Sequence record: MZ443771.1
DNA: 64,000 nt
Direction: 5' to 3' (one strand)
Part shown: positions 11,444 through 35,104 of the stretch, one piece after another
Numbering within the stretch: the stretch's first letter is position 1
How the letters are laid out: the number at the start of each line of letters is the position of its first letter
Made by a program: the position numbers and the translations under genes
Notes under the pieces: model-generated
Databases searched by the model: none
The model's input: the letters and a program-made list of their open reading frames with translations, nothing else
What the model was told of the DNA's origin: nothing

Positions 11444-12201
11444 TTACTGTGCAGAAAATTGAAGCCCGTTTAAAAAGACTGGACTATACTCGCCCCTCAC
11501 CTAGTCGTGAGATGCTTGAGGGACTTATGAAAGATGGACGCACTCGCATTCTTAGCAAATCAGCTTCGAGTGACCTGTGCAAAGACTCGATGGAATACTT
11601 CGAGTTCTGCCTTTCGCAAGTCGGCTCTTTCTGTACTGCGTCGTACAATGCTGTGGAGATTGGTCTGTCTCTCAACATTCAACCGATTTATATCGCTGCT
11701 GCTATTCACCTGTACGGTAGCGATTGGCAGTTCCGTTTCCTTGAGCTTAAACGTTTCGGTCTGCTTGCCCGCGGTGATTACTCTGTGTGGAAGTCTGCTG
11801 ACGCGTGGTTCGGCCTGGGTGAATGCCGTCGTCGCTTAGTACGTGCTGGGGTAACGAACGAAATCTCCAGCGGTCAGTCTGAGCTTCGCATGGCAGTACG
11901 CAAAGGTGAGCTGGACAAGATTCGTGAGATTGCCAAGAAGTTTCCGCATCGCATGATGTCCATTCTCGACGTGAAGCGTGACCCACTGTATAACGATCCT
12001 CGTATTGCGGCATCACGTAAAGCGCGTGAGAAAGCAAAGGCAGAAGCTGCTGCTGCCGGTAAGAAGCTGGCTGAACCTCGTTCGTACTCTGACCTGAGCG
12101 CTGTGTTCAACGGAGCAATCGCGCCTCGTAATACTGATCGTGGGTTTAGCGATTCGTCAGAAACTCGCGGTACGGTGAACGGTCGTCGTTTTCGTGTCTG
12201 A
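11440..12201 (+). CDS. hypothetical protein
   Basis: 253-aa ORF with a basic C-terminus. Confidence 0.75.
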   Translation: MITVQKIEARLKRLDYTRPSPSREMLEGLMKDGRTRILSKSASSDLCKDSMEYFEFCLSQVGSFCTASYNAVEIGLSLNIQPIYIAAAIHLYGSDWQFRFLELKRFGLLARGDYSVWKSADAWFGLGECRRRLVRAGVTNEISSGQSELRMAVRKGELDKIREIAKKFPHRMMSILDVKRDPLYNDPRIAASRKAREKAKAEAAAAGKKLAEPRSYSDLSAVFNGAIAPRNTDRGFSDSSETRGTVNGRRFRV

Positions 12202-12251
12202 TAACTGCGAACGGTAATTTCTGCTGTCAAAACAAATAACGGAAACCTCCA

Positions 12252-13022
12252 ATGAGCAACATTGATAATACAATGCCTGAGGGCAAGTGGGAGTTCAACG
12301 AGCCTGTTGCTGCTGTGTTCGATAACATGCTGCAAAACTCAATCCCGTCGTATGGCCGTATGCGCGACTTGACCTATCGTCTGGGTCGTCAGTTCGTCAC
12401 GCCCGGTACTGCTATCGTTGACCTCGGAGCTTCTCTGGGTCGTGCTGTTGAGCCGTTCTGCAAAGAGTTCGGCGAGTACATCTACGTTCACGCTGCTGAC
12501 CGTCCTGAGCCAGATCGTGAAATCGGTAACATGTACTGCTGCTACGAAGTCGCTCCTGCGATGCTTGAACGCCTGCGTGAAAACGAAGTGCTGAAAGCGG
12601 CCAAAGCGAAAATCAGTAGCGAATCGCTGGTGGACGTTGACACGTTCCGCTTCGACGAACAGGTTGAGTGCTCGCTCATTCTGTCTGTACTCACTCTCCA
12701 GTTCACGCCGATTGAACATCGTCAACACGTCCTTGAGAAAGTCTATGACTCTCTTGCAAAAGGCGGTGCGTTCATTCTCGTTGAGAAGGTTCTCGGTGAC
12801 GACAACTTCCTCGACCGTCTGCTGGTGGACACGTACTATCACATGAAAGGCGACAACGGCTACACGCAAGAATCTATTGCATGTAAGCGTAAGTCACTCG
12901 AAGGTATTCTGGTGCCTGTCAAAGCTGCATGGAACGAAGAACTGCTGCGCAAAGCGGGCTTCAACCGTGTAGAATGTTTCTACCGCGATCTCAACTTCGC
13001 CGGATGGATCGCAATTAAGTAA
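12252..13022 (+). CDS. cmoA: carboxy-S-adenosyl-L-methionine synthase (CmoA homolog)
   Basis: Collinear with E. coli CmoA: WEFNEPVAAVFDNM..SIPSY, DLGASLG, TLQF, GGAFILVEK, NGYT..I..KRKSLE (the conserved carboxylate-binding Arg), AGF and NF. Confidence 0.9.
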   Translation: MSNIDNTMPEGKWEFNEPVAAVFDNMLQNSIPSYGRMRDLTYRLGRQFVTPGTAIVDLGASLGRAVEPFCKEFGEYIYVHAADRPEPDREIGNMYCCYEVAPAMLERLRENEVLKAAKAKISSESLVDVDTFRFDEQVECSLILSVLTLQFTPIEHRQHVLEKVYDSLAKGGAFILVEKVLGDDNFLDRLLVDTYYHMKGDNGYTQESIACKRKSLEGILVPVKAAWNEELLRKAGFNRVECFYRDLNFAGWIAIK

Positions 13023-13032
13023 GGGAAGTAGC

Positions 13033-14295
13033 ATGAAAGTAAACGGGCGTATCTTAGCAATCGTACCGCACAAGACTCTGGCTGATCGCACGAAGTCTGG
13101 TGTTGGTGCTTACATCGACGGACTCGAAGCGTATGGCTTCTGCGACTTCACCACTGACGGTGAGAACAGTTCCGTAACCAAGAGCTTGTGGTTTAACTAC
13201 GGTGACACCACGCTGAGTGATGGTTACAAAGTAGGGCACATTCAAAGTGAACTGCTTGCTGCTCTTGAGCGTCATCCGTATCGTGCAATCATTTGCAGCA
13301 CATACGAAGCGATTGAAGCTGCTGTCGGTCTGGGCTTGCCAAAGATTATGCCCGTTTACTATCGTTCGCATAACAGCTTCCTGTTGACGCAAGATCTCAA
13401 TGGTCTCGGTGCTGAGAAGATTCACCGTGCTCTACTGCAAGCTGGCGTAACTGGTCTGCGTGTGTTAGCGAACTGTGATTCAACTGCAAACAATCTGGCA
13501 TCACGTTATCCTGTTGCTGCGTCTGTCGCGTACAACTCGTTCAACGTGCCTGACTACAATCCACCAGCAAAGCGCAAGCCGACGCTGTTGATTATCTGTC
13601 GCTACGAAAAGGTTAAGCGCCCTGCGTTTGCTGCTCGTATCGCTGCTGCATCTGGTCTGCCTGTTCGTGTGATGACGGGCAGTGATCGCCAAGTTAAAAG
13701 CTGGCAGAAAGAATTGACCGATGCTGGTGTCAAAGACCATACAGTCGTTAGCGGTATCAGCGGCAAAGAGAAACTTGAGTTCATCGGTGCTTGTACCGTG
13801 GCTCTCTCCTGCGCTGAAATCGAATCGTTCGCTAACGGTGTGCGTGAGTCTATCCCGTACTGCCCAACGTTCATCGTGCAAACATCGAAGTTCGACTGGG
13901 CGAAAGATTACACACGCTTCTGCTCTCTGGACAAACACATCCACGTTCGCACCGTCGACCGTGTGACAGAGCAGGAAGTCACTGAGCTGGGTAATGAGAT
14001 TGCTTACTGGGCTACTACTCGCTACCTGAACAATGCTCAACGTAAAGACTTGATGACCAAGTGGGTTGCTCAAGTCGATAAAGGCTGGGCTGACTTTATG
14101 AAGAATGCCGTTGTTGCTGATGACGGTAAGCCTATGAAAACTGACCTGTCGAAAGAACTCGAACAAAAAGGCGTAGTAGACTGGTCAGAAGTACCTGCGC
14201 TTATGCGTACTGTAAAAGCATTACACAAATGCCATGCTCGTATGGGCCTGACATTCGATGGCACCAAAATCAAAACTAAAGGAAGAAAGAAATGA
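13033..14295 (+). CDS. GT-B fold glycosyltransferase (GT4-like)
   Basis: N-terminal SGVGAYI, C-domain LIICRYEKVKRP (GR...K) and ESFANGVRES (E.FG...EA). Confidence 0.75.
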   Translation: MKVNGRILAIVPHKTLADRTKSGVGAYIDGLEAYGFCDFTTDGENSSVTKSLWFNYGDTTLSDGYKVGHIQSELLAALERHPYRAIICSTYEAIEAAVGLGLPKIMPVYYRSHNSFLLTQDLNGLGAEKIHRALLQAGVTGLRVLANCDSTANNLASRYPVAASVAYNSFNVPDYNPPAKRKPTLLIICRYEKVKRPAFAARIAAASGLPVRVMTGSDRQVKSWQKELTDAGVKDHTVVSGISGKEKLEFIGACTVALSCAEIESFANGVRESIPYCPTFIVQTSKFDWAKDYTRFCSLDKHIHVRTVDRVTEQEVTELGNEIAYWATTRYLNNAQRKDLMTKWVAQVDKGWADFMKNAVVADDGKPMKTDLSKELEQKGVVDWSEVPALMRTVKALHKCHARMGLTFDGTKIKTKGRKK

Positions 14296-15326
14296 GCGTG
14301 ATTGGTGATATCTATAACATTCCTCAACCGTATGCGATGTACTGCGGCAATGCCAAAACCAAAGCAATGGCAAAGATTACTGCCGGTATGGTTGAGTGGG
14401 CTCCTGAGAAGGTATGTTGTGTAGTCGAAGACGCTGAACGTTTGTTCGCTGACGTACCGTGTGTTGAAGTGCGCGATCTCGATAAGACCGACGCTGAAAC
14501 TCTGGTTATCGGCTTTGCGCCATTTGGCGGTCAGATTAACGATGACATTGATCGCGTTGTCTGCGAAGCATTAAAGCGCGGTCTGAACGTTGCTGCTGCT
14601 CTGCACGTCAAACTGGCAGACAATCCTAAATACTTCGCGCTCGCTCGTGAGCACGGTGTATCACTGTATGACTTCCGCCATCACCCTGAGCAATATCCTC
14701 TGGGCACCGGTATTCGTCGTGACGGTATTCGCGTTCTGACTGTTGGCACCGACTGCTCCTGCGGTAAGAAATTCACTGCGCTCGCTCTGACCAAGAAGCT
14801 GACCGAGATGAGTCAGAAAGCTGTGTTCTGTGCTACAGGCCAGACAGGCTTCTTGATTAGCGGTCGTGGCATCAACAACGACACTGTGGTTGCTGACTTC
14901 CTTGCTGGTGCTGCTGAGTGGCTTTCACCTGATGACAAAGACGCAATCTATTTGATTGAAGGTCAAGGCGCTATTCGTCACCCTGCGTATACTGGTGGCA
15001 GCATGAGTCTGATTGCTGGCTCGCAACCTGATGCGCTCGTTATGTGTCACACTGTTGGCCGTAACGTCATGATGGGCACTGAGCGCGAGATCAGTATCAC
15101 GGACGAAATCTCTGCTAACCTTGCAGCGGCTGCGATGCACGACTGGTACCCTCGCGTTGTTGGTATCAGTATCAACTTCTGCGAGTCTGGTATGAGCAAA
15201 GAACAGCGCAAGAAGTATCTGGCGACTATTGAACGTAACATCGGCTACGTAGCGTTCGACCCGCAAGAAGGTGGCGAAGCGTTTGACCGTGTTGCTACTA
15301 CCATAGCGTTGCTGTCGCGCCCATGA
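14292..15326 (+). CDS. DUF1611 / DgcN-family P-loop protein
   Basis: VIGFAPFGG, VGTDCSCGKKFT, ATGQTG, DFLAGAAE, IEGQGAIRHPAY, GSQPDALVMCH. Confidence 0.88.
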   Translation: MSVIGDIYNIPQPYAMYCGNAKTKAMAKITAGMVEWAPEKVCCVVEDAERLFADVPCVEVRDLDKTDAETLVIGFAPFGGQINDDIDRVVCEALKRGLNVAAALHVKLADNPKYFALAREHGVSLYDFRHHPEQYPLGTGIRRDGIRVLTVGTDCSCGKKFTALALTKKLTEMSQKAVFCATGQTGFLISGRGINNDTVVADFLAGAAEWLSPDDKDAIYLIEGQGAIRHPAYTGGSMSLIAGSQPDALVMCHTVGRNVMMGTEREISITDEISANLAAAAMHDWYPRVVGISINFCESGMSKEQRKKYLATIERNIGYVAFDPQEGGEAFDRVATTIALLSRP

Positions 15327-16258
15327 TAGTCCTAATCGACAACGCTGCGTTAGCGAGTAATGCAGCGTATTTAAAATCACTCGCACCGACCATGATTCCC
15401 GTTGTGAAAGGTAATTTCTATGGGCATGGTTTAGATTGCGTGACAGCGTTCGCGTCTGACTTTGACGTGCTTGCAGTGCATAACGTCCAAGAGGCATTGA
15501 CGCTGCGTGAGCTTGGACTTGACCACACGCTGCTGATTCTCGGTGGTACTGACGCGCGTATGTGGAATATAGTTCCTGTATTGAATGCAGCGCAAGCCTC
15601 AACGTATGAAGGCCAGTATGCTGTGTTTGCTGATTGGGGCTGTCGTCGTATCAATGTCAGCCCTGGCCAACTTACCAGTCGCCCAGCTCTCGTTCTCATT
15701 CACTCTGAGGACTACCGTCAGCCTGTGTCTGCGCACACTGCTAACGAGATTGCTGTGCGTTACAACATGCCGCGCTCTCGATTGTCTGTAGGCTCAAGCA
15801 TGAATGCGCTTACACCAGACGCGCCTAAGTTGATGCCGCGTGTTGGTATGGCACTTACCGGTTATAGCAGTGATGAAACTGTTAACGGTAATTTGATCGT
15901 AGCGAAGACAGTGCTTGCTCGCATCTGCGATAAGCTGGATGCGGGTCGAGTATTTGGTTACGGTGCATTAGTGCCTAACAGCGCACACATGTTTCTGTAT
16001 TCGATTGATGTGGGTTATTACGATAACTTATATCAGTCAGAGAACAACACGCCTGTGCATTGCCCTAATGTGCCACACGCTAAGGTCACGTTGCTTACTG
16101 GCGTTGCGCGATCAATCAGCATGAACCATGCCTTCGTATTGTCAGATACTGAGCTACCGTTCGACTCTGAAATTGAATTGCTTGGACCGAACGTTCGCGC
16201 AGATTATCTGGCCAAACTTCACGGAACAACAACTGCGAATATTTTAAGGCTGGGTTAA
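15323..16258 (+). CDS. PLP-dependent alanine-racemase-like protein
   Basis: VVKGNFYGHG (PLP Lys motif VVKANAYGHG), AVHNVQEALTLRELG, PRVGMALTG, FGYG (catalytic Tyr), GYYD and ISMNH. Shorter than a typical Alr. Confidence 0.8.
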   Translation: MIVLIDNAALASNAAYLKSLAPTMIPVVKGNFYGHGLDCVTAFASDFDVLAVHNVQEALTLRELGLDHTLLILGGTDARMWNIVPVLNAAQASTYEGQYAVFADWGCRRINVSPGQLTSRPALVLIHSEDYRQPVSAHTANEIAVRYNMPRSRLSVGSSMNALTPDAPKLMPRVGMALTGYSSDETVNGNLIVAKTVLARICDKLDAGRVFGYGALVPNSAHMFLYSIDVGYYDNLYQSENNTPVHCPNVPHAKVTLLTGVARSISMNHAFVLSDTELPFDSEIELLGPNVRADYLAKLHGTTTANILRLG

Positions 16259-16260
16259 TC

Positions 16261-17130
16261 ATGGCTAAACACGTTTTGCGTAAGCTGTTTGAACAGCACG
16301 TTAAGCAAGAGGTTAAAGCTGACAAAGTTGCGGTGCTGCTGTCAAGCGGCCTTGATGGACTTGTCAGTGCTCTTGCTGCCCACGACTTAGGAAAGAAGGT
16401 ACATGCCTTTACTTTCCAGATGGGTGACAACGAAAGTTTTGACAGCAAACACGCACGTAAAGTAGCAGAGAAGATGGGCTGGGAGTTCACGCTTGTGAAA
16501 GTTCCTACGTCCGACACTGCTATCGCTCAGGGCTGGCGCACACTTCACGCCAAGTATCGCTGTATCAAAAAGCGTGACTACGAGTGTGCTTACCCTATGG
16601 TGTATTGCTACAAGGCAATCAAAGAAGCAGGTTACAAGTACGTTCTCAGCGGCCTTGTTGCTGACGCTTACTTCTGCTTTGCGCGTAATACCCACATCGC
16701 AAAAATCAGCGGCCCGCATAGCGTACTCGAAAAGTTCGACGAGTATCGCAAAGAGTATTGGGCGCCGTGGTTCAAGAACGGTAAGAAGTCTCTCGGCGTT
16801 GACGGCTATAATCCAAGTGGTATGCTGCAACACGAAATGCTGTGCGACACTTTCGGCCTGACTCACGTTAACCCGTGGCTGTTGAAAAAAGTCCATGACT
16901 ACTTCATCGGTCGTTCGTGGCAAGAACTAAATCAACCCAAGCAGAAAATGCCAATAACAGAAGCCTGGGCTGATCACATCGCTGTGGTAGGGCATCGTCC
17001 TCACCGTGGCTATCAAACAGAAGCTGGAGTACCTGCGTACTTCGAACGCTTACTGGATAATCCTGAGATCAACTTCAACGGTCGCAAGCGTGTTATGGAC
17101 CTTGCGCGTGATTGGTCAACGAGGACTTAA
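16261..17130 (+). CDS. asparagine-synthetase-like ATP-dependent amide ligase (synthetase domain only)
   Basis: PP-loop VLLSSGLDG and VLSGLVADAYF (AsnB SGEGADE.F). No N-terminal Cys glutaminase domain. Confidence 0.75.
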   Translation: MAKHVLRKLFEQHVKQEVKADKVAVLLSSGLDGLVSALAAHDLGKKVHAFTFQMGDNESFDSKHARKVAEKMGWEFTLVKVPTSDTAIAQGWRTLHAKYRCIKKRDYECAYPMVYCYKAIKEAGYKYVLSGLVADAYFCFARNTHIAKISGPHSVLEKFDEYRKEYWAPWFKNGKKSLGVDGYNPSGMLQHEMLCDTFGLTHVNPWLLKKVHDYFIGRSWQELNQPKQKMPITEAWADHIAVVGHRPHRGYQTEAGVPAYFERLLDNPEINFNGRKRVMDLARDWSTRT

Positions 17131-17131
17131 T

Positions 17132-17752
17132 ATGTTAGTACACATCATTGACGGAAGCGTAGGCGGTAACTATGTATTCCATAATCTGCAAGAGGCTGGC
17201 ATCAACGCGCGTGTTCATGCTCCTAGTGATCCACGTCGCCGCGCAGTAGCAGCAACCTATCCTTCGCTGTCTATGGGATTTACTCCCGAAGAGATTGAGA
17301 AGCATATCGGTAATGTGCTTGGCACGTATCGCGGTCTGTTCTTGATTAGCAGCTACGTTGGTTCGCTGGTGGCTCGCAACATGATTGACCAGTGTGGTCA
17401 GAGTCATAACATCATCTACTGCGATGATCTCAAGTGCGGGTCTACGCCTGTCGTTGCTTCCTCGATTTCTGTAAATGTCTATCAGAAGCAACGACAACTC
17501 GGACGCATTGCAGGTCGAATCAAACACTTCGACTTCGACCATGAGTTCATTGTAGCTGACAAGGCTGTGCGTTTTGCAGCAGGGTCAGAATTTGATGAGC
17601 ATGGTGCGCGTGAAGAACTGGACGACACGCCCAAGTTCTTATCGAGTCCGTCAATGATTGTTGCTGCACACAAACTCGGTGTGAAGCGCAACGTGTATCA
17701 CAACTACGCTGGTCTGGTGCAAGAGTTCCTTGAAAAGCGCCAGCAGCAATAA
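17132..17752 (+). CDS. degenerate glutamate/aspartate racemase (MurI)-like protein
   Basis: Start reassigned to ATG 17132 (RBS gagga). HIIDGSVGG resembles GVFDSGVGG, and TPEEIEK resembles KS.EEI. The two catalytic Cys positions appear replaced (LISSY, RIKHF). Confidence 0.45.
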   Translation: MLVHIIDGSVGGNYVFHNLQEAGINARVHAPSDPRRRAVAATYPSLSMGFTPEEIEKHIGNVLGTYRGLFLISSYVGSLVARNMIDQCGQSHNIIYCDDLKCGSTPVVASSISVNVYQKQRQLGRIAGRIKHFDFDHEFIVADKAVRFAAGSEFDEHGAREELDDTPKFLSSPSMIVAAHKLGVKRNVYHNYAGLVQEFLEKRQQQ

Positions 17753-17764
17753 CGCGAGGGTACG

Positions 17765-18028
17765 ATGATCAATCGCTTTCAGTTAAAACGAGTTCCAGTG
17801 ATTGAAGCATGTCAGTGGAACGGCGAGAACATTGATGAGATGAATCAATTTCTCAACGGTAGCGGTTACGTTGTAGGTCGCTATGTTCAGATTGGTGTTA
17901 CAGACCAATTCGGTAAGCCGACTCTTGCAAACGTATCAGTCGGCAACTATGCAGTGAAACACGAAGACGGTAAGTTCGACGCAATCACCGCATCAGAATT
18001 GATGGACCTTTACGTACTGGCGGATTGA
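17765..18028 (+). CDS. conserved small phage hypothetical protein
   Basis: IEACQWNGEN...GNYAVK...GKF pattern, common in phage ORFs. Confidence 0.7.
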   Translation: MINRFQLKRVPVIEACQWNGENIDEMNQFLNGSGYVVGRYVQIGVTDQFGKPTLANVSVGNYAVKHEDGKFDAITASELMDLYVLAD

Positions 18029-18035
18029 GGAACAA

Positions 18036-18491
18036 ATGAACCTGTTTTCTATTCTAAAGCAGCAAGTGAAGAAAGCGCTGTCGACCGAAGCTAACCACGA
18101 ACCAGAAATACGTGCGCAGTTCGACTGGCGTTACGCTCTTGAGATCAAAGGGCAGATGTACATTGTAGGCAAGACGGGCGCTAACACCTGCTTCTATATT
18201 GAGCCAGGTACTACCGAGCCTGTTGGTTGTTATCCAGATGCGCTTCTGGAGAAGATTGATCAGTGGGGTGGCAGCAAGTATGTTTCGTTTGCTATCTACT
18301 TCAAACACTTCGATAGCCCTGTCGCTGAGAATATCAAGACAGAAGAACAAGCGCTGAAAGGTAAGCCGAAGACATTTAAGAAAGGTTACTTCATCTGCGG
18401 TGTGACACCGAAAGGCAAGCGTATCAAACTGTATCGCTTGCAGCAAGGTCTCAGCGGTATGCAGTGGGTTGCCGTCGAACCTAAAAAGTAA
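18036..18491 (+). CDS. hypothetical protein
   Basis: RBS gagga. Confidence 0.7.
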   Translation: MNLFSILKQQVKKALSTEANHEPEIRAQFDWRYALEIKGQMYIVGKTGANTCFYIEPGTTEPVGCYPDALLEKIDQWGGSKYVSFAIYFKHFDSPVAENIKTEEQALKGKPKTFKKGYFICGVTPKGKRIKLYRLQQGLSGMQWVAVEPKK

Positions 18492-18519
18492 TCACGGTCT
18501 GTCCGTGTGAGGAGCAAGT

Positions 18520-31889: not shown

Positions 31890-32225
31890 ATGAAATACGA
31901 TCCGAAGAAAGACTACAAACCATTTCAGTATCTGGGTGCGCCTAAAGCTCCAACGAGCGGGTACTTAGGCAGTACAGTGTATGTCGTAGAGAACGATGTT
32001 AACATCGGAAGTGATGAATGCGAGTTCGTATTCACTGTAGCTCAGATGAATGAGATGGATAGAGGTACTGTTACGTTCCGTGCTAAAGACTCGGGCGGAG
32101 GTATCACGATAAAGAAATGCTCGGTCTCAGGTCTGAAAATGGTAATTAAGCTGGACAGACGCGTCATACAGTTTGGCAAAGTTCAGGTCGAATGGCAGAC
32201 AACGCCCCGACATTATTACTACTGA
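31890..32225 (+). CDS. hypothetical protein, probably late-expressed
   Basis: SD aggag lies inside the hairpin. Confidence 0.7.
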   Translation: MKYDPKKDYKPFQYLGAPKAPTSGYLGSTVYVVENDVNIGSDECEFVFTVAQMNEMDRGTVTFRAKDSGGGITIKKCSVSGLKMVIKLDRRVIQFGKVQVEWQTTPRHYYY

Positions 32226-32236
32226 ATCTGTAAAGA
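32225..32236 (+). promoter_or_regulatory. motif A variant (AATCTGTAAAGA)
   Basis: About 33 nt before ATG 32269, upstream of the ParB-like/C5-transferase pair. Confidence 0.5.
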
Positions 32237-32268
32237 CAGAGAAAGAGCAACCGATAAGAGATACGATA

Positions 32269-32973
32269 ATGGCAAAAACTGCTACCAAAACAAAGGACGG
32301 AAAAAAGAAAGGCGAGTTGAAGTTTGATCTGAAAAAACTCAATTCAGTCTCTCAGCTCAAGGGCGCAGAGTACAACCCGCGCTTCATTACTGACAGTCGC
32401 TTGAAAGCTCTCGAAGGTTCTCTCGGGAGTTTCGGTGATCTGTCTGGTATCGTGTTCAACAACAACATCAAGTCTGGTGTGTTGATCTCAGGCCACCAGC
32501 GTCTGAAATCAATCGACGGTTGGAAAACTCGCATCGAGATTCAGCCGACGACTGACAAGCACGGTACTATCGGTCTGGGCTACATTCATGCAACGCATCC
32601 GAAGAAAGCTGATCGTGTTATCAGCATTCCTCTGCGTGTCGTGAACTGGACTGATAAGAAAGCTGAGTACGCAGCGAACATCGCAGCGAACGCCCACGGC
32701 GGTGAGTTCGATAACAAGAAGCTCGCCAAGCTGGTTGAGAAACTCGATCTGAATACGATCAAGCCTCAGCTGCTGGGTCTCGACCCGCTTGAGATTCGTG
32801 GTCTGCAAGCCAAGATCAAGATTCAGGCGAACGTCGAAGATACGAAACGTGCTGGCAAGACTACTGGCCAGATGAACGGCAGCACCGGTAAGTTTAATGA
32901 GTACAACCCTGATGATGTGGGTGACACTCTGAACTGCACCTGCCCGCGTTGTGGATTTAAGTTCGAGGGATAA
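32269..32973 (+). CDS. ParB/Srx-like N-terminal domain protein with a C-terminal Zn ribbon
   Basis: YNPRFI...LEGSL..FG.L..IV, LISGHQRL, and C-terminal CTCPRCGFKF. Confidence 0.75.
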   Translation: MAKTATKTKDGKKKGELKFDLKKLNSVSQLKGAEYNPRFITDSRLKALEGSLGSFGDLSGIVFNNNIKSGVLISGHQRLKSIDGWKTRIEIQPTTDKHGTIGLGYIHATHPKKADRVISIPLRVVNWTDKKAEYAANIAANAHGGEFDNKKLAKLVEKLDLNTIKPQLLGLDPLEIRGLQAKIKIQANVEDTKRAGKTTGQMNGSTGKFNEYNPDDVGDTLNCTCPRCGFKFEG

Positions 32974-32974
32974 T

Positions 32975-35104
32975 ATGATCATCAAGCCGCCAACCATGAA
33001 GGAAATCAACAAGCTGGCTAAACCCTGGCGTGGTATGAGTTTCTTCGCAGGTTGCGGTGGGTCTTCGACCGGTCACAAGATGGCCGGTATCGACATTCTG
33101 TTGAGCAACGAGTTTATTGACTCTGCGCGTGAGTCGTATGAAGCAAACCACCCGACAACCAAAGTGCTGCCTCATGATATCCGTCGCTTAGACCCAAGCA
33201 AGCTGTTGCGCTACTGCGGTCTTGCTAAGGGTGAGCTGGATTTGCTTGATGGTAGTCCTCCGTGCTTTACCGAAGACACAATCATCCACACTGCTGACGG
33301 CATGAAGTTCATTTCTGATATGCACGTCAACGATCTGGCAATGACGAGCGTTGGTGAATACTTTCCTGTGTACGACACTATGGTTCGTCCGTATGTCGGT
33401 ACGATGCACAAGATTGAAACGATGCTCGGTAGCAACAAAGCAACGCCAGAGCACCCGTTCTTTGTTCGTCGCTCTCAGGCAGACGGTAGCTACTCTGAGC
33501 CGTTCTGGTGTGATGCGAAAGACGTGCAAGAAGGTGACTTGCTCGGTACGCCGCGCACTACCCCTGACATGGGGATTGACGTGTATCAGGCTCAGATTGA
33601 TCAGTTGCCTAAGTTAGTAGCGGACTGGGTGACTTACCCTGAGTTCTGGTGGATGATTGGTCACTGGTGTGATCGTGGCACAATCGAAACAGTTAACGGT
33701 GTTGACGTCATCTGCTTCGAGTCGCACTCAAGCCTTGAGAACGCGATGATCGAGCAGGCGTTTGATGCGCTTAAAATCAGTAGCCTGAATCGTATCGACA
33801 CGACAACGGCGCAGCGCAAAACATTCCGCACTGTTATCGAAGCAGAGCTGGTGCAGTTCCTGCGTCGATTCGTCAGTCAGGAGCAGAACAAGTTTTCTCG
33901 TCGTCTGCCTGCAATCGTGTTCCATTTGTCAAACGAGTTGAAGCAACAATTCATTCTCGGTTGTGCGGGGCATGACTACGTGACTGCTATGGGCACAAGC
34001 CTTGCTATCACATCTGATAGTCGCCGCTTCCTGATTGAGCTGAACTACCTGTGTGCGTCTGCTTTCAATCGTCCGCTGTTTGACGGTCTTATCTGGGCAG
34101 ACGTTAACTTCGGTAGTGCGTTAACGCCGCGTGAGCGTAACAGTTCACGAGCGCATATCGGCTTCCTGTTCCTGCAGGATGAAGCGCTGTTCATGCACGA
34201 GTTCTCCGATGAAGACCCGCATCTCTGGGTTGAAGTGATTGAGAACCTCGCGTATCAGGCGACCTGTGACGTGTATAACTTCTCTGTGCAGACAGACGAG
34301 ACATACGTTGCAAATAGCATGGTCGTTCACAACTGCAAAGGCTTCTCTACTGCTGGTGTGAAAGAAGAAGGCTGGGGCAAAGAAGTTAAATACAGCGACA
34401 ACAAGTATCAGCAGGTTGATGACCTGTTCGATCAGTATTGCCGTATGCTTCAAGGCATGGAGCCAAAAGTGTTCACTGCGGAAAACGTCAGCGGCCTAAT
34501 CAAGGGTACCTCTAAAGGGTACTTTGTCGAAATCATGAAGCACTTCGACAGATTAGGTTATTATGTTCGTGCTCCGATGCTGAATGCTTGCTGGCTTGGC
34601 GTACCGCAGTCGCGTGAACGTATCATCTTCATGGGTGTGCGCAAAGACGTTGCCCATGCTCTCGGCTATAAGTCTGCTCAGACCGCTGTGCCTGATGTTA
34701 TCCCGTGCGAGACGCAAGCGTTTCTCGGTGATGCGTTGCCGCACATCATGCGATACAAAACAACGCAGCGTGACCTGATCAAATATCTGCCTGCCGTTAA
34801 CGGTCCGATGCCTACGATTACTGCTGCTGATGCGATTGCGTATGAGACTGCGCGATTCTCGTCTGCTGGCTTTATCGAAGACAACAAAGGTCATCGGCGT
34901 AAGCTGACCATCGACGAACTCAAAGTTATCTCTGGACTGCCGTCTGACTATAAGCTGATGGGTGAGTTTGAAGAACAATGGGAACGTCTTGGTCGTATCT
35001 GTGTGCCAGCAATGACACACGCTGCATCTAAGGCTTTCATCGAGCACATTCTTCTGCCGTATGCGAAGAAGCGTAAGAAGAAGCCCGGCGATATCTTTAA
35101 GTAA
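32975..35104 (+). CDS. DNA cytosine-C5 methyltransferase-fold enzyme, predicted carboxymethyltransferase; intein-containing
   Basis: Motif I FFAGCGG, IV GSPP|C-KGFS, VI ENV, VIII PQSRER, IX RKLTIDE. Motif X reads LGRICVP (Arg at 34994-34996 in place of Asn). Start ATG 32975; 352 aa after splicing. Confidence 0.85.
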   Translation: MIIKPPTMKEINKLAKPWRGMSFFAGCGGSSTGHKMAGIDILLSNEFIDSARESYEANHPTTKVLPHDIRRLDPSKLLRYCGLAKGELDLLDGSPPCFTEDTIIHTADGMKFISDMHVNDLAMTSVGEYFPVYDTMVRPYVGTMHKIETMLGSNKATPEHPFFVRRSQADGSYSEPFWCDAKDVQEGDLLGTPRTTPDMGIDVYQAQIDQLPKLVADWVTYPEFWWMIGHWCDRGTIETVNGVDVICFESHSSLENAMIEQAFDALKISSLNRIDTTTAQRKTFRTVIEAELVQFLRRFVSQEQNKFSRRLPAIVFHLSNELKQQFILGCAGHDYVTAMGTSLAITSDSRRFLIELNYLCASAFNRPLFDGLIWADVNFGSALTPRERNSSRAHIGFLFLQDEALFMHEFSDEDPHLWVEVIENLAYQATCDVYNFSVQTDETYVANSMVVHNCKGFSTAGVKEEGWGKEVKYSDNKYQQVDDLFDQYCRMLQGMEPKVFTAENVSGLIKGTSKGYFVEIMKHFDRLGYYVRAPMLNACWLGVPQSRERIIFMGVRKDVAHALGYKSAQTAVPDVIPCETQAFLGDALPHIMRYKTTQRDLIKYLPAVNGPMPTITAADAIAYETARFSSAGFIEDNKGHRRKLTIDELKVISGLPSDYKLMGEFEEQWERLGRICVPAMTHAASKAFIEHILLPYAKKRKKKPGDIFK
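33263..34333 (+). mobile_element. intein (357 aa) with a degenerate LAGLIDADG-type domain, inserted just before the catalytic Cys
   Basis: Starts CFTEDTIIHTADG, has block B ATPEHPF, block F DVYNFSVQTDETY and ends VHN followed by Cys+1. Endonuclease-like blocks WWMIGHWCDRG and QFILGCAGHD are degraded. Confidence 0.92.

Follow-up and report, generated by a model that had tools for sequence, protein, structure and literature searches.

A compact, cysteine-less glutamate racemase homolog in a carboxymethylcytosine hypermodification island of jumbo phages

Among the genes of a 64,000-nucleotide stretch of sequence record MZ443771.1 (the window), which comes from the genome of the Erwinia jumbo phage pEa_SNUABM_20 (Alexandravirus, 266 kb), one encodes a 206-residue protein, P0001, and is labelled 'hypothetical protein' in all deposited relatives. 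An earlier note, made by eye from the sequence, had read it as a catalytically dead glutamate racemase of the MurI fold. Here we report, from a predicted structure and profile alignments, that P0001 is a compact, extremely diverged glutamate racemase (MurI) homolog that keeps the two-domain pseudo-symmetric fold and the interdomain cleft, with serines at both catalytic cysteine positions. The gene belongs to an island that also encodes homologs of CmoA, CmoX and CmoY; in the pathway characterized by Yang et al. (2025, PMC12783734), phage CmoA makes carboxy-S-adenosylmethionine (carboxy-SAM), 5-carboxymethylcytosine is installed by the C5-methyltransferase homolog CmoX, and glycine is then joined to it by the AsnB-like CmoY. 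In P0001 the racemase fold has probably been taken over for ligand binding and no longer serves racemisation; our preferred interpretation, to which we assign a probability of roughly 0.6, is that this MurI-derived Ser/Ser homolog is a non-racemising accessory of the 5-carboxymethylcytosine DNA hypermodification pathway.

Predicted fold and descent from MurI

Sequence-family libraries failed to place the protein. P0001 itself had zero matches in Pfam, NCBIfam, PHROGs and the PDB sequences (phmmer), and 16 close homologs scanned against Pfam and NCBIfam at E ≤ 10 returned chance matches only, as did a search of the PDB with a hidden Markov model (HMM) of the P0001 family (RNase J, S18). The Asp_Glu_race model PF01177 likewise found nothing, even at E ≤ 10, in a six-frame scan of a 99%-identical genome (G001). 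The family is tiny: searching 1.84 billion representative proteins with the family profile yielded five clusters, word searches for relatives yielded 17–22 proteins at 90% clustering, and all located members reside in jumbo-phage genomes or contigs. Two of these contigs (L026, JAVWLC010000408.1; L027, JAVWLC010000354.1) are short, of low coverage and binned in a Raoultibacter metagenome-assembled genome; as they are Alexandravirus-like jumbo-phage pieces in an actinobacterial assembly, we attribute them to bin contamination. The MurI-like gene in L027 is split across two frames, by a frameshift or an assembly error. The P0001 gene is under purifying selection, with a median pairwise ratio of nonsynonymous to synonymous substitution rates (dN/dS) of 0.14 (range 0.06–0.19), compared with 0.07 for CmoA and 0.05 for the downstream gene of 151 amino acids (aa).

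A first AlphaFold2 model of P0001, built from the 16 close homologs, had a mean predicted local distance difference test score (pLDDT) of 43 and was unusable. With an alignment of 23 sequences (A4), to which members of 24–31% identity had been added, AlphaFold2 gave a model with a pLDDT of 92.1 and a predicted template modelling score (pTM) of 0.88, on which independent BFVD models of the homologs from phages Y3 and pEa_SNUABM_5 superposed with template modelling (TM) scores of 0.95 and 0.80, respectively. Glutamate racemases filled essentially every top row of a Foldseek search against the PDB (E 7e-5 to 1e-3, probability 1.00, TM approximately 0.6), so that the different fold against which the earlier note had set its proposal did not appear. 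VIA-align superposed the model on Listeria MurI with a Z of 14.8 and a root-mean-square deviation of 3.6 Å over 182 of the 206 residues, and its first 49 entries all belonged to the Asp/Glu/allantoin/hydantoin racemase superfamily. A search independent of Foldseek, covering 48,161 representatives, placed MurI at Z 13.9, 13.6 and 13.2; all 10 chains with Z ≥ 8 were members of the Asp/Glu racemase superfamily, and the next match (Z 7.9) covered one domain only. The model spans residues ~3–224 of the 265 in MurI, without the C-terminal 40 residues, and the two positions equivalent to the catalytic cysteines lie 98 residues apart rather than 111–112, which fits the loss of the helix between strands 4 and 5 (MurI helix alpha4). 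A class-I glutamine amidotransferase (HisH-like) or alpha/beta-hydrolase reading, hinted at by the N-terminal motif and by ESM-Atlas feature matches (~0.9, Ser_hydrolase/Abhydrolase), was rejected because the putative His190 is unconserved in distant members and the fold searches return racemases only.

The relationship could also be traced in sequence profiles, by way of a second phage protein. Our MurI profile combined E. coli MurI with MurI open reading frames (ORFs) from 23 actinobacterial genomes, the unpublished genome G003 being excluded; it was built from genomes since a word search seeded with E. coli MurI gave only >85% identical sequences. Aligned directly with this profile (hhalign, local mode), the P0001 family scored weakly (P 0.003–0.007), though FDSGVGG was already matched by IIDGxVGG, and the helix that follows PYG by the EEIE helix. 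The link came from the Yersinia phage fHe-Yen9-02, in which a 190-aa gene, p190, lies just upstream of the P0001-type gene and resembles that neighbour; this single p190 sequence matched the P0001-family profile with Prob 74 and E 2.8e-5. p190 retains the MurI signatures FDSGAGG, PFG, CACNT, GTxNT, AED and LGSTH, and it bridges the two families: built from three members, its profile reached Prob 97.2 (E 3.4e-11) against MurI and Prob 96.4 against the P0001 family (E 1.3e-9, 181 columns). On this profile evidence, homology between the P0001 family and MurI is established through p190.

A fourth p190 member, P0143, occupies the same slot on a Logan contig, beside the most divergent member of the P0001 family. 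The p190 genes, an unannotated family, invariably sit between a CmoY ligase of the 'Yen' type and the Ser/Ser gene, and none was found in IMG/VR or in other GenBank phages. Judging from its retained motifs, p190 is a candidate one-directional racemase that would supply the Yen-type ligase.

Residues of the former active site

We mapped the MurI active site onto P0001 by chaining the two profile alignments, from E. coli MurI to p190 and from p190 to P0001, together with the secondary structure of the model (Table 1). Both catalytic cysteines are substituted, as the earlier note had proposed: their positions fall on Ser74 and Ser172, two of only 12 invariant columns among 23 sequences with identities down to 24%. 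Also lost are the Ser of FDSG, the Asn-Thr after the first cysteine, the Thr-His after the second and the helper Glu. Thus both catalytic bases and their helpers are gone, and what is left is the Asp of FDSG with a few Ser/Thr-type positions. In the superfamily member OpaE, the C90S mutant keeps 4.8% activity, and C199S and C90S/C199S are almost inactive (PMC12661438). Because the bases and helpers are missing and these mutants are almost inactive, that P0001 is dead as a glutamate racemase, the central claim of the earlier note, is a well-founded inference from sequence and analogy; its pocket is also too altered for glutamate binding to be assumed.

Table 1. Correspondence of active-site residues along the chained profile alignments
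E. coli MurI	p190	P0001
D28	D6	D7
S29	S7	G8
C92	C63	S74
N93-T94	N64-T65	Y75-V76
S96	S67	S78
T135 / T138	T99 / T102	S110 / S113
E170	E126	A150
C204	S154	S172
T205-H206	T155-H156	P173-S174

The five strings that had been matched to MurI by eye are all present in the translation of 17132–17752 (VHIIDGSVGGNYV at residues 3–15, TPEEIEKHI at 51–59, LFLISSYVGS at 69–78, GRIKHF at 128–133 and FIVADKA at 139–145), and three of the five pairings agree with the profile alignments through p190 and the order of secondary-structure elements. These are the N-terminal pairing (IIDGxVGG with FDSGVGG), that of TPEEIEKHI, whose EEIE helix corresponds to the helix after PYG, and that of LFLISSYVGS, in which LISS-YVGS corresponds to IAC-NTAS. 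The other two have to be moved. GRIKHF had been taken for the second catalytic motif, and the true counterpart of LGCTH is FLSSPS (169–174); FIVADKA had been taken for 'LIDSA', and the (L/I)(I/V)DSG strand of MurI corresponds to YHNYAG (189–194). The p190–MurI alignment ends just before the DSG strand, and the YHNYAG assignment therefore rests on colinearity, VIA-align ranges and motif spacing.

Most polar residues that are invariant or nearly so line the predicted cleft (D7, S73/S74, S78, S110/S113, D143, S171/S172 and N191/Y192), placed at C-terminal strand ends as judged from the secondary structure of the model. A second conserved group, R67, D86, G89, S91 and N93, sits on the opposite face of the N-domain and may be structural or form an interface.

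The hypermodification island across jumbo phages

In the window, the island runs from CmoA to p151, with the CmoX-type gene as a distal partner (Table 2). Over bases 12000–18500 the window matches pEa_SNUABM_20 with 100% identity and unchanged coordinates. The stop codon of the ligase (17128–17130) directly precedes the P0001 ORF, and scans for promoters and terminators around the P0001 gene stayed at chance level and gave no operon boundary. The ligase is 33% identical to the CmoY gene of the Synechococcus phage S-B43 (E 8e-36). The earlier note had called P0001 the last gene of its operon; instead, two co-directional genes, p87 and p151, follow after gaps of 12 and 7 nt. Neither has a Pfam match. 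Both belong to the same insertion block as CmoA, because all of these genes are absent together from Dickeya phage JA11, and both may be further unrecognized parts of the carboxymethylcytosine system. The note had also counted P0001 as a second racemase-fold protein in the operon: the Alr-like neighbour is a racemase by family, whereas its pyridoxal phosphate (PLP)-dependent TIM-barrel fold is a different one.

Table 2. Features of the P0001 locus and of related loci (window coordinates unless a locus name is given)
Feature	Position	Strand	Evidence or remark
CmoA homolog (carboxy-SAM synthase), first island gene	12252..13022	+	TIGR00740, 142 bits; phrog_4752; PMC12783734
Unknown 420-aa protein, variable cassette	13033-14295	+	
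DUF1611/DgcN-like, variable cassette	14292-15326	+	
Truncated Alr-like, variable cassette	15323-16258	+	
Amide ligase of the AsnB type without a glutaminase domain, CmoY homolog ('LigA' type), immediately upstream of P0001	16261..17130	+	PF00733, 59 bits
GAGGA Shine-Dalgarno sequence, 6 nt 5' of the P0001 ATG, within the 3' end of the ligase gene	17121..17125	+	Sequence read directly
MurI-derived cysteine-less protein P0001, 206 aa	17132..17752	+	Translation, AlphaFold2, Foldseek, VIA-align, hhalign chain via p190
Asp7 codon, invariant, Asp of MurI FDSG, sole unchanged MurI active-site residue	17150..17152	+	Alignments A2/A4
Ser74 codon, invariant, position of first catalytic Cys	17351..17353	+	In the model, follows strand 69-72 and precedes helix 75-82
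Ser172 codon, invariant, position of second catalytic Cys	17645..17647	+	In the model, follows strand 169-170 and precedes helix 173-182
87-aa gene p87	17765-18028	+	Follows the P0001 gene, same island
151-aa gene p151	18036-18491	+	Same island
CmoX-type C5-cytosine (carboxy)methyltransferase homolog, SPPC motif, distal island partner	32951..35104	+	Present in the same 53 phage records as CmoA
p190 gene of fHe-Yen9-02 (gp254)	L002:6404-6973		p190 genes encode 190-196 aa
p190 gene	L026:324-893		
p190 gene	L027:800-1225		
p190 gene	L067:6399-6989		

Comparison of the window with loci L002, L005–L018, L060–L063, L067 and L068 revealed that wherever a P0001-type gene is present (window, L002, L005–L018, L061, L062, L067 and L068) it shares a co-directional block with CmoA and a CmoY-type ligase, always in the same slot directly before p87-p151. 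Between CmoA and P0001 lies an exchangeable cassette, of which four kinds occur. In the first, ligase A is accompanied by DUF1611, to which the 420-aa gene and the Alr-like gene may be added; in the second, ligase B stands by itself; the third combines ligase C and a 2-oxoglutarate (2OG)-Fe(II) oxygenase; and the fourth pairs the 'Yen'-type ligase with p190 (four of four cases). The four ligase types are mutually 25–35% identical, except that Yen and B share ~50%, and the pattern suggests several different amide hypermodifications, horizontally exchanged, within one phage group. Divergence in the ligase is not mirrored in the MurI-like protein: the ligases B of pEa_SNUABM_30 and the Rivsvirus pEa_SNUABM_5 share 84% identity, but the accompanying MurI-like proteins share 80% and 25%, respectively, with P0001.

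Two lineages lack the gene altogether. Neither Snuvirus, which has the ligase A cassette (its ligase A being 83% identical), nor Yoloswag, which has the ligase C cassette, holds a P0001-type gene or a remnant of one detectable by tblastn at E ≤ 10. The empty slot holds small ORFs (L060:5877–6131, pEa_SNUABM_7 gp021, 84 aa; L063:6709–6951, Yoloswag gp20, 80 aa), in which no similarity to P0001 was detectable. Across phage records, the P0001-type gene was found in 40 of the 53 that hold CmoA, CmoX and p151 and in no others; the converse fails, as 13 records carry the CmoA/CmoX/p151 module without it. JA11 is without CmoA and CmoX (PMC6143709), and this syntenic phage lacks exactly the block from CmoA through p151 while retaining the conserved flanking genes, as is the case in the JA11-type Dickeya phages. 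From the constant slot, the mixed cassettes and the losses we conclude that the P0001 gene is part of the island, is tied to its constant part rather than to a given ligase, and is dispensable.

Several features of the distal part of the island and of Pseudomonas phage PaBG are recorded here. The CmoX-type gene of the window is split by a ~360-aa intein exactly at the catalytic Cys of its SPPC motif (Cys1 ... HN/Cys+1). Directly upstream of it, a 266-aa ORF (32173–32973) had no Pfam match; it occupies the slot of the ParB-like gene of Pseudomonas phage PaBG, and the CmoX paper reports partners with ParBc domains (PMC12783734). In PaBG the gene order is ParB-like, CmoX, CmoA, p151 homolog, ligase, and directly after the ligase comes a 203-aa orphan (gp305, L065:8290–8898) with a P0001-like position and size. 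hhalign of gp305 against the P0001 family gave P 0.06 over 19 columns only (VLGxxYRGxFL), and we did not accept it as a homolog; no relatives of gp305 were found in the phage collection.

Possible roles and relation to known systems

In the interpretation that we prefer, P0001 would no longer racemise glutamate and would survive as a ligand-binding accessory of 5-carboxymethylcytosine DNA hypermodification, its serine-rich cleft and two helix N-termini holding a carboxylate-bearing small molecule or a modified base; candidate ligands are an amino acid, carboxy-SAM, a prephenate-type dicarboxylate and a modified base. The protein would serve the constant part of the pathway, not one ligase, and would be helpful but dispensable. 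Several points weigh against this interpretation. Its functional half is inferred from residues and gene neighbourhood, and the residue mapping comes from profile alignments and the secondary structure of a predicted model, not from coordinate superposition. The gene has been lost in Snuvirus (ligase A) and Yoloswag (ligase C) with the rest of the island kept, so any role must be non-essential or supplied by the host. A different, working active site would account equally well for the invariant Ser/Ser pair and for Asp7 and Asp143 at the cleft, and the invariant R67, D86, G89 and S91 lie away from the cleft, maybe at a protein interface.

The former of these two residue groups would suit a protein that is still an enzyme, with repurposed chemistry: the Ser74/Ser172 pair, which Asp7 and Asp143 might activate, would have an intermediate of the pathway as its substrate. 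It could epimerise an amino acid already amide-linked to 5-carboxymethylcytosine, in the way that OpaE and NozR work on peptide-like scaffolds, or serve as a Ser-nucleophile hydrolase or transferase. We regard this as possible, with the odds against it. Invariant polar residues do crowd the strand ends of the cleft (D7, S73/S74, S110/S113, D143, S171/S172, N191/Y192), the gene is under purifying selection, the superfamily already includes enzymes with non-amino-acid and amide substrates (PMC12661438, PMC10156859), and genes related to D-amino acids (Alr-like, DgcN-like, p190) occur in the variable cassettes. Yet homologs lose almost all proton transfer when Cys is replaced by Ser (OpaE, PMC12661438), the helper His and Glu are missing, the gene is dispensable in two lineages that have the same cassettes, and a closed small-molecule cleft fits a base in duplex DNA poorly. 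A bolder proposal, that the Ser/Ser protein catalyses, without a cofactor, a reaction of a type not seen before in the superfamily, on a carboxymethylcytosine-derived DNA modification or its precursors, is tentative and rather doubtful; stereo-inversion or trimming of an amide-linked amino acid, or boosting of carboxy-SAM or prephenate supply, would be examples. Were it true, the progression from MurI (Cys/Cys) through p190 (Cys/Ser) to the P0001 family (Ser/Ser) would record a stepwise change of function within a hypermodification pathway.

That P0001 merely sits beside the island and is directed at the host, as a gyrase inhibitor or a dominant-negative partner of the dimeric host MurI, seems unlikely to us. 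MurI of E. coli, B. subtilis and mycobacteria does inhibit DNA gyrase independently of racemisation (reviewed in PMC10886550), a fold kept after catalysis has gone suits a binding function, the R67, D86, G89, S91 and N93 patch is conserved outside the cleft, and the gene does not co-vary with ligase type; against this, it occurs strictly with CmoA, CmoX and the ligase and is missing from JA11 together with the island, the parts of the surface that most resemble MurI (the C-terminal 40 residues and helix alpha4) are deleted, and 10–14% identity to MurI makes retention of a specific interface unlikely. We judge it very improbable that the adjacent amide ligase needs P0001 as an obligate subunit, one that replaces the AsnB glutaminase domain and delivers or positions the amine substrate. 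The ligase indeed has no glutaminase domain, and in three cassette types the two genes are 1 nt apart or overlap, with the ribosome-binding site inside the ligase gene. The mix-and-match pattern of ligases and MurI-like proteins nevertheless disfavours such a subunit: four unrelated ligase types accompany one MurI-like type, there is no sign of co-evolution (the 84%-identical ligases B have partners 80% or 25% identical to P0001), and the 83%-identical ligase A of Snuvirus lacks a P0001-type gene. Moreover, in Y3 a 2OG oxygenase gene separates the ligase gene from the P0001-type gene, and the characterized SpCmoY works alone (PMC12783734).

An accessory role, as we prefer, would enlarge a pathway that was first described, with three enzymes, in December 2025 (PMC12783734); the paper on CmoA, CmoX and CmoY reports no racemase-like component and mentions none of the phages considered here. 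To it the P0001 family would add a conserved unannotated fourth component in the system of Erwinia, Dickeya and Yersinia jumbo phages, and by implication p87 and p151 as well. Natural comparison pairs exist in pEa_SNUABM_20 versus Snuvirus and in Y3 versus Yoloswag. The results also name a 'hypothetical protein' of ~40 deposited phage genomes that sequence-family libraries miss and assign it a fold, and the Cys/Cys, Cys/Ser and Ser/Ser series presents a two-base racemase fold stripped of its bases with selection continuing.

With MurI itself (PF01177; PDB 3isv, 2jfn, 5w16), P0001 shares a pair of pseudo-symmetric alpha/beta domains in which strands and helices follow one another in the same order (Z 13.6–14.8, ~182 residues), the Asp of FDSG (D7), the Ser of CNTAS (S78) and the GT..T loop, present as AS..S. 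MurI differs in having ~265 aa rather than 206, including the helix alpha4 and the C-terminal strand and helices that P0001 is without, and a Cys/Cys rather than a Ser/Ser pair; P0001, moreover, is missed by PF01177, phage-encoded and located in a DNA-modification island. Closer at hand are its p190 paralogs, that of fHe-Yen9-02 and three metagenomic ones, likewise compact phage derivatives of MurI in the same island, with Ser at the second cysteine position and an EPDY/xNY motif. Unlike P0001, they keep FDSGAGG, PFG, CACNT with the first cysteine, the Glu of AED, and STH, and may catalyse one-directional proton transfer; p190 is also confined to one ligase type, LigYen, in all 4 cases, to which the P0001 family is not so tied. 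Replacement of one of the two catalytic cysteines is known from arylmalonate decarboxylase (AMDase), which has Gly74 and Cys188 at these positions. EcL-DER/YgeA (Thr83/Cys197) is a further natural superfamily member with one catalytic Cys replaced (PMC12661438). In such members the replacement makes the chemistry unidirectional or changes it. Both keep one Cys where the P0001 family keeps none, and the structural match of P0001 is lower, with Z 8.4 to 5ell and only 86 residues aligned to 2vlb. OpaE and NozR, which work on peptide-like natural products, demonstrate that amide-linked amino-acid residues in secondary-metabolite-like pathways can be substrates of this fold (PMC12661438, PMC10156859); unlike P0001, which matches them at Z 8.3–8.6, they keep the Cys/Cys pair and belong to the allantoin-hydantoin branch.

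As a system, the nearest counterpart is that of S-B43 (PMC12783734), which shares CmoA, an SPPC CmoX-type enzyme and a CmoY-type ligase (33% identical), without a MurI-like gene. The group of pEa_SNUABM_20 differs from it in turn by a hypervariable ligase cassette and by a CmoX gene that lies 15 kb away and bears an intein.

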